Below the pieces are notes generated by a model. The model was given only the letters and a program-made list of their open reading frames with translations. It searched no databases and had not been told where the DNA came from. From sequence record KT919972.1: DNA of 64,000 nucleotides, one strand, 5' to 3'. Positions within the stretch are counted from its first letter, which is position 1, and every line of letters begins with the position of its first letter. Positions 60,847-64,000 of the stretch are shown here, in pieces. Both the position numbers and the translations under genes were made by a program.

Positions 60847-61343
60847 TGAAGATTATTTACCTGCCTCACTACAAAGAAAACAAAGAACTTGGTCTAAAAG
60901 CAATTGAGCCAATTGGTGTGAAAGACCCAGATGACGCGGGTATTGATCTGCGTGCTGCAATTGAAGAGTCAATCGAGCTACAACCGGGTGCTTCAGTTGT
61001 TATCCCGTCTGGTGTCAAGATTCATATTGGTTCGCACCCACTACATCGAGTATTCACTGATTTAGGTGTATACGGCGCGATTGCACCGCGAAGCGGTCTT
61101 GGGTTCAAGCACTTCTTACGCCTTGCAAACACAATCGGGATTATCGACGCGAACTATCAAGGCGAAATCATGATCAAGATTCGCAACGAAGGCGACGACG
61201 TGCTGCATATTGAGCGCGGTGATCGTATCTGTCAGTTGATTTTCCACACTTACGTGAAGAACGTGCAGTTTGAAGAAGTTGATGATTTCGACGAAGAAAC
61301 TGACCGCGGTGAAGGTGGTTTTGGTCGCAGTGGGGTGAAATAA
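60846..61343 (+). CDS. dut: Trimeric dUTPase
   Basis: AGIDL, APRSGLG, GIIDANYQGEI, RICQL and RGEGGFGRSG motifs. Start from the TAATG overlap. Confidence 0.96.
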   Translation: MKIIYLPHYKENKELGLKAIEPIGVKDPDDAGIDLRAAIEESIELQPGASVVIPSGVKIHIGSHPLHRVFTDLGVYGAIAPRSGLGFKHFLRLANTIGIIDANYQGEIMIKIRNEGDDVLHIERGDRICQLIFHTYVKNVQFEEVDDFDEETDRGEGGFGRSGVK

Positions 61344-61585
61344 TGTCAAATGAAGATGATTTGTTGGATACTGACCGTATTCTAAATTCAATGCGTATAA
61401 TTCTGACAGACGAGCGCGTTGAAAGTGCGCTTCGTCTCGATGTTGCACGCGACCAAGAAGAAAAGCAGAAAATGATCGATGGTCGTAAATCGACTCTTGG
61501 TCAGATTCAAGATCAACAACACAAAATCGAAAGCAAGCTTGAATTGCTGCATGATTTACTAAATGTGAAGAGAGAAATATCATGA
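61343..61585 (+). CDS. Small coiled-coil hypothetical protein
   Basis: 80 aa, overlapping stop/start with both neighbours. Confidence 0.7.
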   Translation: MSNEDDLLDTDRILNSMRIILTDERVESALRLDVARDQEEKQKMIDGRKSTLGQIQDQQHKIESKLELLHDLLNVKREIS

Positions 61586-62274
61586 ATGATAAACCCATTT
61601 ACGACATACTAATTGACTATGAGGGGTTCGACGTGACCCCTGACGCTGCGGTTATTGAACTAGGTGCAGTTGAATTCGAGCACGATTTTACGAAAGTCCC
61701 TGACTACCAAGAGCTTGTGAAAAACTCTTTTCGCTGTAAGTTCGAGATTAAAACCCAGAAAGGTAAGCGAAGCATTAACAAAGCTACTGTGCAATGGTGG
61801 TCTGAACAATCAAAAGAAGCGAAAGAAATTCTAATACCTAGCGCAGAAGACGTGTCGGTTGAAGAAGGTCACAAGTTGTTCATTGAGTGGATCGAAGAAA
61901 ACACTCGCTACGACGGTCGTTCACACTTGTACTGTCGCGGTAATAACTACGATATCCCGTTAATGGCAGATTGCTTCAAGTACAGCGGCTTGCGTCATGC
62001 GGTCATCGAACGATTCTGGAAATTCCGTGATGTTCGTACTCGTATTGAAGCATTGATGTTACAACGTGACATGTGTAAAGTGCCAATTCGTCGTGACGCA
62101 ATGCCAGGTTTCATTCACCACAACGGCGTACACGACTGTGCGAAAGATGCAATGATGCTTATCATGGCAGCGCGTTACGCACTTGATTTAGAAGAACTAC
62201 CCGAGAAAATGGAATGTCATGAAGTATCGGTTGATTTCACTGACGAAGAGAAAGAGGAACTTGGGCTACTATGA
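61582..62274 (+). CDS. dexA: Exonuclease A (DEDDh 3'-5' exonuclease)
   Basis: LIDYEG, YCRGNNYDIP, FWKFRDVRT and HNGVHDCAKD motifs. Confidence 0.92.
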   Translation: MNDKPIYDILIDYEGFDVTPDAAVIELGAVEFEHDFTKVPDYQELVKNSFRCKFEIKTQKGKRSINKATVQWWSEQSKEAKEILIPSAEDVSVEEGHKLFIEWIEENTRYDGRSHLYCRGNNYDIPLMADCFKYSGLRHAVIERFWKFRDVRTRIEALMLQRDMCKVPIRRDAMPGFIHHNGVHDCAKDAMMLIMAARYALDLEELPEKMECHEVSVDFTDEEKEELGLL

Positions 62275-62432
62275 TGATTGCTGTACATTTACTATCACAA
62301 GCCAAGCCAGTTGTTCATGATAATGTAAAGAACGCTTACACTAAAGACGGTCTTTACTGCTTGATGATGAAAGACGGTATGGTTTACAAATACCCACTGA
62401 TTAATATTTTCAGAATTACAGAAAATATGTAA
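62271..62432 (+). CDS. 53-aa hypothetical protein (absent from the ORF track)
   Basis: Translated by hand as MMIAVHLLSQAKPVVHDNVKNAYTKDGLYCLMMKDGMVYKYPLINIFRITENM. ATGA overlap with dexA and GAGG SD. Confidence 0.7.
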   Translation: MMIAVHLLSQAKPVVHDNVKNAYTKDGLYCLMMKDGMVYKYPLINIFRITENM

Positions 62433-62440
62433 AAAAGTGG

Positions 62441-62469
62441 TTGCGTTGTCGATGTGACTTGTGTAATAT
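62441..62469 (+). promoter_or_regulatory. Sigma70-type early promoter
   Basis: TTGCGT-17 bp-TAATAT with an upstream A-tract. Confidence 0.78.
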
Positions 62470-62501
62470 ACTCACATCGACAACGAAAAGAGAACAATAT
62501 T

Positions 62502-62639
62502 ATGACAACGAATCGCTTAGATTGGACAATCGAAAAGAAAGCTCAGTTCATCGCGACATACAAAGACGGTACTGTTTTAGTTGCTCGTACTCGCGAAGAG
62601 CTTAATTCGCAAATCAATGAGTTTGAAAAAACGTTATGA
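62502..62639 (+). CDS. 45-aa hypothetical early protein
   Basis: Start ATG 62502 follows an AGAG SD downstream of the promoter. Confidence 0.7.
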   Translation: MTTNRLDWTIEKKAQFIATYKDGTVLVARTREELNSQINEFEKTL

Positions 62640-63034
62640 ATTTGCATTCGTTCATGTACAAATGGAAAAGATTTTCATTTGAATTCAACAATTACGCGAT
62701 TGAGAAGCAGCGTGGCTTAGTCGGGACTGTTGACTTTGTGATGAAGAAACACTTCACACATCGAGTATATGACCGATTCTGTGCTGCTGAACATTCAACA
62801 TTGCGTAGAATGCTGTATCATACAGTAAACAAGCACTTAGGTGAAGTTCTGTATTGGTATTACAGTGCTGAAAAGCGTGAGCTTGCTATCAAGCGTGAAG
62901 ATATTTACATAATATTTGAGAAGGGAATTAAAGGTTGTATTTTGATTACGACGATATATCGTAATCAAAATAAGCAAAACCATGATAAATTCTTTTTGAT
63001 TGATATAAGCAGAAAGCAAAATGAAGCAAATTAG
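62636..63034 (+). CDS. Hypothetical protein
   Basis: 132 aa, ATGA-coupled to the upstream gene. Confidence 0.7.
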   Translation: MNLHSFMYKWKRFSFEFNNYAIEKQRGLVGTVDFVMKKHFTHRVYDRFCAAEHSTLRRMLYHTVNKHLGEVLYWYYSAEKRELAIKREDIYIIFEKGIKGCILITTIYRNQNKQNHDKFFLIDISRKQNEAN

Positions 63035-63266
63035 ACTTGGTGACTATATCGAGGTCACTGAAAGACTAGACCAAGAGAGCTTTTTTGGTCAGTTGGTTGA
63101 TATTGCACCGTGTCTATGGGCACGTGGTGATTTTCTACGACTTGTTGATGACGCAGGTAATGAAGTTCAATTGAACACTGTGAACATCGACATGATTAAT
63201 GGCACAGTTGTGAGTGAATTAACTAGAAACGCTCATGGCTTTATGTATTGTGAGGAAAAGATTTGA
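63021..63266 (+). CDS. Hypothetical protein
   Basis: 81 aa within the tightly packed operon. Confidence 0.7.
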   Translation: MKQIRLGDYIEVTERLDQESFFGQLVDIAPCLWARGDFLRLVDDAGNEVQLNTVNIDMINGTVVSELTRNAHGFMYCEEKI

Positions 63267-63706
63267 AAGGTTACGTATTTGTAAATCGCTATTGTAAAGG
63301 TATTCAAGCTGGTATTCAAGGTGCACATGCGCTTCTACGTCTTGCGCGTAAAGCAGATAACCCAGTTTTCAATAAGTGGCTGAATGATCACGAGACGATT
63401 TGTGTTCTGTCAGCGGCTAGTCATGACCATCTTGAAGAAATCGAAGAGACAATTCGTGAAATGGGTGTTGTTGAAGACATTACATTTTTTCAAGAAGAAG
63501 GTTTACATCACTCACTAACAGGTGTAGCATTCATTGGCGACGACACGCTAATGCAAGTTCAAGCCGAAATGAAAGAATGGCGTGAACTGCGTAAGATCGG
63601 CGAAGGTCTAAAGCGTCGCGACTTTGATTCAGATATGTTCTACAAATACGGTCGAACATATGAACTTGCAAAATACTTAGAGGGGTTTCATTCTCATCAT
63701 GGATAA
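63263..63706 (+). CDS. Putative peptidyl-tRNA hydrolase, PTH2-like
   Basis: G.QAGIQGAHA...KW....ETICVL...FQEEGL..SLTGVAF resembles the PTH2 AQ.AHA...W..K.VL pattern. Confidence 0.55.
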   Translation: MKGYVFVNRYCKGIQAGIQGAHALLRLARKADNPVFNKWLNDHETICVLSAASHDHLEEIEETIREMGVVEDITFFQEEGLHHSLTGVAFIGDDTLMQVQAEMKEWRELRKIGEGLKRRDFDSDMFYKYGRTYELAKYLEGFHSHHG

Positions 63707-63929
63707 CTTAAATCTTAAATTGACTACTGCGACTCGCTTTGAAGAGCTAATGACAAAACCAGGTGTTGATGTTAAAAATAGCTCTTCTGGTCCTGAATTC
63801 ATTACGACTGTTTACGAGAATGGTGAATTACTTGCAGAGCGCGTATTGTACGTTTCACAAGCAGAGCACTTTGAAGTGAAACTACCTGAAACGGCAAAGC
63901 AAGCACGCAAAACGAGCAAACTGCCGTAA
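63699..63929 (+). CDS. Hypothetical protein
   Basis: 76 aa with overlapping start. Confidence 0.65.
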   Translation: MDNLNLKLTTATRFEELMTKPGVDVKNSSSGPEFITTVYENGELLAERVLYVSQAEHFEVKLPETAKQARKTSKLP

Positions 63930-63965
63930 AAACTGTTTATTAACTAACTTTGTGAGTGTAATATT

Positions 63966-64000
63966 ATGAAATCTAAAGGTTTTACTCTGATCGAATTGAT
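63966..64000 (+). CDS. Start of ORF with type IV prepilin N-terminal cleavage/methylation motif (3'-truncated)
   Basis: ATG AAA TCT AAA GGT TTT ACT CTG ATC GAA TTG AT translates to MKSKG|FTLIEL(M/I). Only 11 full codons are visible. Confidence 0.75.
   Translation, partial: MKSKGFTLIEL

Follow-up and report, generated by a model that had tools for sequence, protein, structure and literature searches.

Why would a lytic phage encode, among genes of early type, a protein that opens like a type IV pilin and stops before a pilin head? The question is raised by the end of a 64,000-nucleotide stretch of sequence record KT919972.1 (hereafter, the window). An initial annotation had read the last 35 nucleotides as the opening of an open reading frame (ORF), MKSKG|FTLIEL, with the class III signal of type IV prepilins, had assigned it to the early genes of a lytic T4-like phage, and had suggested that the phage makes a pilin mimic.

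Proteins with a class III signal enter the membrane with the N terminus in and the C terminus out. On the cytoplasmic side, a PilD-type peptidase cuts behind Gly-1 and methylates residue +1, and the mature pilins wait in the inner membrane. During assembly, α1N, and Glu+5 especially, makes docking and subunit-subunit contacts; Glu+5 is needed for pilin assembly and dispensable for cleavage.

The gene and its setting in phi-Grn1

Over its last 3 kb, the window matched Vibrio phage phi-Grn1 (KT919972.1) with 100% identity. This lytic myovirus of V. alginolyticus, with a genome of 248.6 kb, belongs to the genus Schizotequatrovirus (KVP40-like T4-type phages), so the initial annotation had named the phage type correctly. 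The ORF itself was borne out by translation and by an annotated coding sequence (CDS), phiGrn1_0145, which the record calls a "hypothetical protein". Its 35 nt within the window start with ATG, read MKSKGFTLIEL, and end with two bases, AT, of a codon that is ATT (Ile) in the source record. The whole CDS runs past the window end, occupying record positions 125966-126169 (L001:2967-3170), and its 204 nt encode 67 amino acids. We refer to the product as the mini-prepilin. The features around its start are given in Table 1.

Table 1. Features at the 3′ end of the window, in window coordinates
Feature	Position	Strand	Remarks
PTH2-type peptidyl-tRNA hydrolase-like ORF, 147 aa	63263..63706	+	PF01981, 26.1 bits vs cut-off 23
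Upstream hypothetical ORF, 76 aa (~75 aa in relatives)	63699..63929	+	Left-hand neighbour in every relative
Intergenic spacer, 36 nt	63930..63965	+	Between upstream 76-aa ORF and mini-prepilin
Shine-Dalgarno-like GAGTG	63954..63958	+	7 nt 5′ of ATG; invariant in 8/8 aligned phages
Mini-prepilin CDS phiGrn1_0145, first 35 nt	63966..64000	+	Leader MKSKG, cleavage site G|F, FTLIEL with Glu+5

From 57.5 kb to the window end, every gene lies on the + strand, and the genes clustered with the mini-prepilin on this strand are of prereplicative type (primase, dut, dexA, and td). Since the gene belongs to this same-strand run, and since the T4-type late promoter motif TATAAATA has no occurrence in the window past 47881, the mini-prepilin is probably made before replication and co-transcribed with dut, dexA, and td, in keeping with the early-operon setting first proposed. 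The td gene starts 10 nt past the mini-prepilin stop. The neighbours we inspected were the PTH2-like hydrolase, small hypothetical ORFs, td, dut, and dexA, and none of them was an assembly gene (ATPase, platform, secretin, or peptidase). The PTH2-like ORF, annotated as "hydrolase" in relatives, lies two genes 5′ of the mini-prepilin and is a constant member of the syntenic block; a phage-encoded Pth2 within an early cluster is unusual. A family search with the upstream 76-aa ORF returned no match.

The sequence around the start codon is strongly conserved. The 19 nt 5′ of the ATG are invariant from KVP40 to nt-1, as are the first 15 nt of the CDS, which exceeds what coding needs alone would explain; the region may be a translation-initiation element or an internal promoter element for td. 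A σ70-like match at 63940-63967 on the + strand (TTAACT, 16 nt, TATTAT) covers the mini-prepilin start codon. Because of this overlap with the ATG, it could not work for the mini-prepilin as an ordinary promoter would, and we rejected it in that role. At the other end of the gene, a terminator-like hairpin with a T-run (L001:3137-3157; record 126136-126156) falls within the final 11 codons of the mini-prepilin gene in phi-Grn1, just before td. It spans the codons for the WDDDF end, which is restricted to the KVP40/ValKK3 group.

A prepilin signal and helix followed by a short tail

The phiGrn1_0145 product consists of a leader, MKSKG; a hydrophobic segment; a linker rich in Q, S, T, and P; a YEIDGQLMQCTPV block; and the acidic end WDDDF. 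With the stop at codon 68, the mature protein would comprise ~62 aa. The leader, of five residues and charge +2, is invariant in eight isolated phages and has a charge of +2 or +3 in distant members. The mature protein starts F-T-L-I-E, of which F, T, L, and E are invariant over all 9-12 aligned members, and position 22 is always G, S, or P, a helix breaker. The tail of ~35 residues is acidic (charge -2 to -7) and nearly devoid of Lys and Arg. Every member has exactly one Cys, invariant in 12 of 12.

Profile searches agreed with the proposed prepilin signal. The phi-Grn1 protein scored 30.3 bits against PF07963 (N_methyl; gathering cut-off 21.2) and 26.6 bits against TIGR02532 (cut-off 16.3), exceeding both curated cut-offs, and its KVP40 ortholog scored 36.3 and 36.6 bits, respectively. 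Since the protein combines a 5-residue basic leader, the G|F junction, Glu+5, Gly14, a breaker at position 22, and a hydrophobic segment of ~27 residues, its N terminus has the form of a canonical class III signal with its α1N helix, and we regard the assignment as a genuine prepilin signal as well supported. The charges of leader (+2/+3) and tail (-2 to -7) fit an N-in/C-out topology.

The initial annotation had proposed looking past position 64000 for a hydrophobic helix and a pilin head, and the record supplies only the first. FTLIEL is followed not by a stop but by 19 further hydrophobic or small residues, and the hydrophobic segment covers mature residues 1-27. The head is absent: the Pfam scan of the phi-Grn1 protein gave no match to PF00114 (Pilin), and the pilin and pseudopilin equivalog HMMs (GspG, GspH, PilA, PpdD, ComGC, and others) aligned with the N terminus only and scored far under their cut-offs, the top values being 28 bits versus 80 for GspH and 26.7 versus 88.85 for GspG. 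A full pilin is ruled out by these scores together with the 67-aa length. Thus, of the suggested pilin mimic, the signal and helix stand and the head does not, and the family scores and length strongly support describing the product as a headless prepilin.

The only full-length family match was phrog_13280 (E = 3.6e-46, with residues 1-67 aligned over all 67 profile positions), a phage family without assigned function that is apparently confined to KVP40-like vibriophages. A sequence search of solved structures returned pilin N termini only, namely Geobacter PilA-N chains (61-90 aa), MshA, and PilA; the KVP40 helix matched the MshA chain at nearly every one of mature residues 1-18. As the N-terminal 25 residues are generic, they do not single out a target machine.

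We ran AlphaFold2 twice, with alignments of three and seven sequences, and obtained the same picture. A helix at residues 8-31 (pLDDT ~90 at residues 11-20) is followed by a disordered linker and, over the YEIDGQLMQCTPV block, by a β-hairpin (45-49/52-56) modelled at low confidence (pLDDT ~60). The block is thus probably a β-hairpin. A Foldseek search of the PDB with this small, low-confidence model returned only noise at E > 1.

To gauge how often such a motif occurs by chance, we searched both strands for back-translated G-F-T-L-x-E. It occurs once in the 64-kb window, whereas shuffling predicts 0.03 occurrences, the motif having turned up in 3 of 100 shuffled sequences.

Conservation and synteny in KVP40-like phages

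When the isolated-phage collection was searched by tblastn, the mini-prepilin gene was found in 28 of 28 KVP40-like records and nowhere else. A search of 5.8 billion proteins yielded four clusters, and a profile search of 1.84 billion representatives added the full-length relatives P0006, P0007, and P0010 and the looser P0034 and P0031. In eight isolated phages, and likewise in four divergent relatives from metagenomes, the gene is directly followed by td. The isolated phages include nt-1, QD01, and CZ01, which have V. natriegens as a host. We established the position in phi-Grn1, KVP40, PG216, phi-pp2, QD01, nt-1, and CZ01 and in the contigs of P0006, P0007, P0010, and P0034; for VS1, which is unannotated, position was judged from flanking DNA that aligns with the other phages. 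Wherever the contig reaches, the order is dut, dexA, small ORFs, the PTH2-like hydrolase, the 75-aa ORF, the mini-prepilin, and td, with SIR2 and topoisomerase further on.

Down to ~45% identity, K-G-F-T-L-x-E, mature Gly14, and the G, C, and T of the tail block are invariant. Codon analysis of the isolated phages gave pN = 0 for both the leader/cleavage motif (pS up to 0.56) and the YEIDGQLMQCTPV hairpin block (pS up to 0.78). Between them, pN/pS was 0.1-0.33 in the helix and 0.5-0.74 in the linker, which also carries in-frame indels. For the whole ORF, pN/pS was 0.2-0.34, and all indels are in-frame. These values show purifying selection at the protein level, concentrated at both ends of the mini-prepilin.

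Two observations concern more distant phages. In a divergent T4-type metagenomic phage (L256:6222-8099), the td gene 3′ of the mini-prepilin is split into two pieces by a gene for an I-TevI-like GIY-YIG endonuclease, resembling the T4 td intron. P0031 (L258:3113-3334) is a 73-aa prepilin-like protein whose end, ...DIDGNLIQCT, is similar to the mini-prepilin tail. It is encoded among small early-type ORFs, adjoining a T7-type RNA polymerase gene, which marks another type of phage, and the resemblance of the tails may reflect a shared motif or convergence.

Short prepilins in viral and cellular genomes

P0004, encoded on another phage-like contig, shares the leader and helix but ends in an unrelated tail with two Cys, and several other PHROGs match the mini-prepilin at the N terminus only. 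These matches raised the question of whether short prepilins typify phages. We scanned IMG/VR and the GTDB species genomes for back-translated K-G-F-T-L-I-E-L, with ~120 stretches listed for each, and counted ORFs that were unique and complete and had a leader of 35 aa or less, choosing start codons by rule. Among the matches listed, which are arbitrary, non-random samples for a single motif variant, with some host DNA in IMG/VR, 40 of 95 ORFs on viral contigs were shorter than 100 aa (42%), compared to 2 of 108 in cellular genomes (2%; Fisher p = 1.3e-13). Headless prepilins were thus enriched ~20-fold in viral over cellular contigs among these matches. The short viral ORFs comprised 14 under 50 aa and 26 of 50-99 aa among the matches listed, and for the 50-99 aa class alone the viral-cellular difference gave p = 5e-8 (Fisher, same matches). 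One of the two short cellular ORFs listed is a Geobacter-type PilA-N from a Desulfuromonadales genome.

The short viral ORFs have the character of prepilins. Every ORF retained in the viral set contains a hydrophobic helix (among the matches listed), and all ten short viral ORFs that we sampled passed the PF07963 cut-off. The tails of these ten had no Pfam or PHROG match. For nine of the ten, the largest neighbours match phage PHROGs, mostly for replication and nucleotide metabolism. Among the matches listed, many short viral prepilin ORFs are on contigs >100 kb, and at least two tail Cys are present in 17 of the 26 that measure 50-99 aa.

A complete IMG/VR census of K-G-F-T-L-I-x-L-I, in which position +5 is free, yielded hydrophobic ORFs of two size classes, 14 being short (50-99 aa) and 45 mid-sized. 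Glu+5 was kept in 14 of the 14 short ones. The matches without Glu were non-hydrophobic chance matches, save one fragment of 11 aa.

BLAST clustering of the short viral ORFs by tail gave alignments dominated by the common N terminus. One group stood out: a 64-aa mini-prepilin (L017:6772-6963, L074, L096, and L104, with variants in L090, L073, and L010) that occurs on at least four unrelated IMG/VR contigs and has the conserved tail SKQSC..GGKW..QLCTYN. Judged by this tail, it is a second, independent family of predicted headless prepilins. Searched by tblastn against the isolated-phage collection, neither P0004 nor the 64-aa family gave a usable match, and a permissive tblastn with the N-terminal 30 residues returned the KVP40 family only. 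In two viral ORFs (L073:3010-3231 and L085:1573-1758), we observed an in-frame tandem duplication within the helix, such that the ELLI...I segment occurs two or three times; this suggests rapid evolution of helix length.

A tentative generalization, which we consider rather doubtful, is that headless prepilins of 50-100 aa are a widespread, unrecognised class of early lytic-phage proteins that hijack prepilin peptidase and poison or compete with type IV pili, T2SS, and competence pili. The KVP40-family gene would then be a vertically inherited example whose tail targets a specific Vibrio machine.

Relation to known pilins and phage inhibitors

With type IV pilins and T2SS pseudopilins (PF07963/TIGR02532), the mini-prepilin shares a basic leader, Gly-1, Phe+1, Glu+5, Gly14, the breaker at position 22, and an α1N of ~25 residues. 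Unlike them, it has no amphipathic α1C and no β-sheet head, its mature form would be ~62 aa rather than roughly 120-170 aa, and it is not encoded beside pil, msh, or gsp assembly genes. In terms of sequence, the mini-prepilin thus has all the marks that define the prepilin superfamily and lacks the structural ones of a pilin or pseudopilin (head, equivalog, and gene context).

Geobacter PilA-N ("geopilin domain 1"; PDB 2m7g, 7tgg, and 9egp) is similar in total size and in its N-terminal 25 residues. It is a single long helix of ~50 residues and pairs with a separately encoded PilA-C. In contrast, the predicted mini-prepilin helix stops at ~31 (the tail being modelled at low confidence) and is followed by a linker and hairpin tail, and the adjacent gene is td. 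A Geobacter-type PilA-N/PilA-C pair was ruled out, as there is no partner gene.

Among viruses, the archaeal provirus SNJ2 encodes full-length type IV pilins, PilA1 and PilA2 (PMC12426801). Like the mini-prepilin, they are products of viral genes and carry a class III signal, and they exploit host type IV filament machinery. However, the SNJ2 pilins are complete, belong to a temperate archaeal virus, and assemble surface pili, whereas the mini-prepilin is headless and belongs to a lytic bacterial myovirus.

Bacteriophage proteins that act on type IV pili offer a different comparison. PfsE is a very small inner-membrane protein, and Tip, Aqs1, and PfsE bind PilB or PilC. Tip (D3112), Aqs1 (DMS3-like phages), and PfsE (Pf4) are non-pilin phage inhibitors of type IV pili (PMC12378983). 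They resemble the mechanism we propose below in being small phage proteins that shut off type IV pili and exclude pilus-dependent phages. They differ from the mini-prepilin in having no known prepilin signal and in belonging to temperate or filamentous Pseudomonas phages.

A possible mechanism and its alternatives

By analogy with established pilin biology, the mini-prepilin would take up an N-in/C-out orientation in the inner membrane. PilD/VcpD, the prepilin peptidase of the host, would cut its leader and N-methylate Phe1, and the mature 62-aa protein would enter the host membrane pilin pool. Since the α1N features are all kept under strict selection and the head is missing, a processed, membrane-resident headless pilin is the most economical reading, and judging from the signal and helix it is very likely that the mini-prepilin is at least a processed, membrane-anchored prepilin-like protein. 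Once the protein is in the pool, α1N and Glu+5 could dock onto type IV filament machines of the host, at the assembly platform or at the base of the growing filament; MSHA or ChiRP pili, the Eps T2SS, or both are candidate targets. The headless subunit might then be a competitor or a poison, since it has no head to stabilise a filament, and the conserved periplasmic hairpin might supply specificity. Pili draw on the membrane pool and cycle in seconds, which would let a poison of this kind take effect before the lytic cycle ends.

We put the probability that the mini-prepilin acts on type IV filament machinery at roughly 45%. The phage might gain a fast shut-down of pili or secretion, which could, for example, exclude pilus-dependent competitor phages. 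That exclusion of other phages is the purpose is itself unlikely. The receptor of KVP40 is OmpK, not a pilus, and self-exclusion through pili is therefore unlikely.

The alternative that survives best, which we nevertheless consider improbable overall, is that the signal and helix serve just for membrane insertion and anchoring, the role of effector falling to the invariant periplasmic hairpin and its one Cys (in some members with an acidic ...DDDF end). The hairpin might block DNA injection by superinfecting KVP40-like phages, influence lysis timing, or bind envelope proteins, possibly through a mixed disulfide. The pattern of constraint suits such a role, as YEIDGQLMQCTPV is conserved as strongly as the cleavage motif and the single Cys is never lost; this strictly conserved tail could equally mean that the helix is a mere delivery device. 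The acidic tail suits export, and because KVP40 uses OmpK, excluding its own kind would need a mechanism that does not involve pili. There is also precedent in T4, whose Imm and Sp are early, small envelope proteins for superinfection exclusion. Like them, the mini-prepilin is small, comes from a prereplicative-type gene of a T4-type phage, and has a predicted envelope location. This likeness is a functional analogy: Imm and Sp carry different membrane-targeting signals, and our Pfam and PHROG scans of the mini-prepilin returned N_methyl-type families only, with no match to Imm or Sp. A plain signal-anchor would need none of Gly-1, Phe+1, Glu+5, and Gly14, all of which are invariant. Burying a Glu carries a cost for a helix that has only to anchor, yet every short viral prepilin of the census retained it. 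Finally, other phage mini-prepilins have the same headless layout with unrelated tails, which makes the pilin N terminus the common denominator.

A second alternative places the action of the mini-prepilin at the prepilin peptidase rather than at the platform. As a decoy, it would occupy or inhibit the enzyme and halt maturation of all host pilins and T2SS pseudopilins. In Vibrio, one peptidase serves both type IV pili and T2SS; leader and cleavage motif show no departure from the canonical form and do not vary, and a small protein co-transcribed with abundant early genes could reach a high copy number. However, cleavage needs neither Glu+5 nor the conserved tail, both of which are under strong purifying selection, and a block in processing would deplete the existing pool of mature pilin slowly compared to a short lytic cycle. 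We regard a decoy as quite unlikely.

Equally hard to favour is a structural role, in which the host would polymerise the 62-aa protein into a thin filament or use it as a minor or tip subunit that alters adhesion. Such a role would accord with the retention of Glu+5 and Gly14, with the top PDB sequence matches, which are Geobacter PilA-N chains of similar size, and with SNJ2, which shows that assembling pilins can be virus-encoded. It fits poorly with a predicted helix that ends at ~residue 31 and gives way to a disordered linker, with no long α1C as in PilA-N, and with a next gene that is td rather than a pilA-C-like partner; a lytic phage with a short cycle would also gain little from new filaments.

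That the motif arose by chance in an ORF that is no functional gene, as its short length and "hypothetical" annotation might allow, is effectively refuted by the motif expectation, the HMM scores, and codon selection on an ORF present in all 28 genomes and in relatives of ~45% identity.

Earlier notice and significance

The pilin resemblance of the mini-prepilin is already known at the level of annotation. The entry for KVP40.0030 notes a "match to PF00114", that for QD01_029 notes "PilE", and the UniRef name is prepilin-type cleavage/methylation domain protein. The ValKK3 paper describes ORF231 as having low homology to PilE and raises virulence as a question (PMC13142089). We found no functional or expression data for the mini-prepilin in the literature on phage-encoded pilin-like and pseudopilin proteins or on KVP40 transcriptomes. 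As far as the literature we found shows, the headless architecture, the conserved tail motif, the synteny fixed across the clade, and the strong enrichment in phages are new.

If the mini-prepilin does jam type IV pili or T2SS, it would represent a new, genetically compact way for lytic phages to disable surface machines of the host with the subunit code that these machines themselves use. The inhibitors of type IV pili that we found in the literature (Tip, Aqs1, and PfsE) are all non-pilin proteins of temperate or filamentous phages. The ~20-fold enrichment in viral contigs among the matches listed makes the question general and testable, and the mini-prepilin is a concrete lead, itself testable, to a possibly general phage strategy. 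Headless prepilins would also be natural minimal pilins for probing α1N alone at the peptidase and at the assembly platform. There is a practical side for the use of KVP40-like phages in aquaculture, as the mini-prepilin has been flagged as a possible match to a virulence database (ValKK3 paper, PMC13142089). For a headless protein of 62 aa from a strictly lytic phage, a role as an adhesin is very unlikely.

Other features of the KVP40-like genomes

Homing endonuclease genes vary in presence across the block that contains the mini-prepilin. KVP40 has an HNH endonuclease gene (KVP40.0040, L002:12941-13648) where phi-Grn1 has none, and in ValKK3 (KP671755.1, 115577-119371) a homing endonuclease gene is inserted inside the 3 kb that match window positions 61000-64000. 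On the + strand at 62454-62639 and 63021-63266, the window contains frames of 61 and 81 aa, as in the annotated KVP40.0025 and KVP40.0027. The same two ORFs are shorter in the phi-Grn1 annotation (phiGrn1_0140, 138 nt; phiGrn1_0142, 174 nt), where their start codons are probably miscalled. Lastly, the record for Vibrio phage V07 (MT135025.1) is 349,331 bp long, ~100 kb above all other members of the clade (244-250 kb), and may be concatenated or misassembled.
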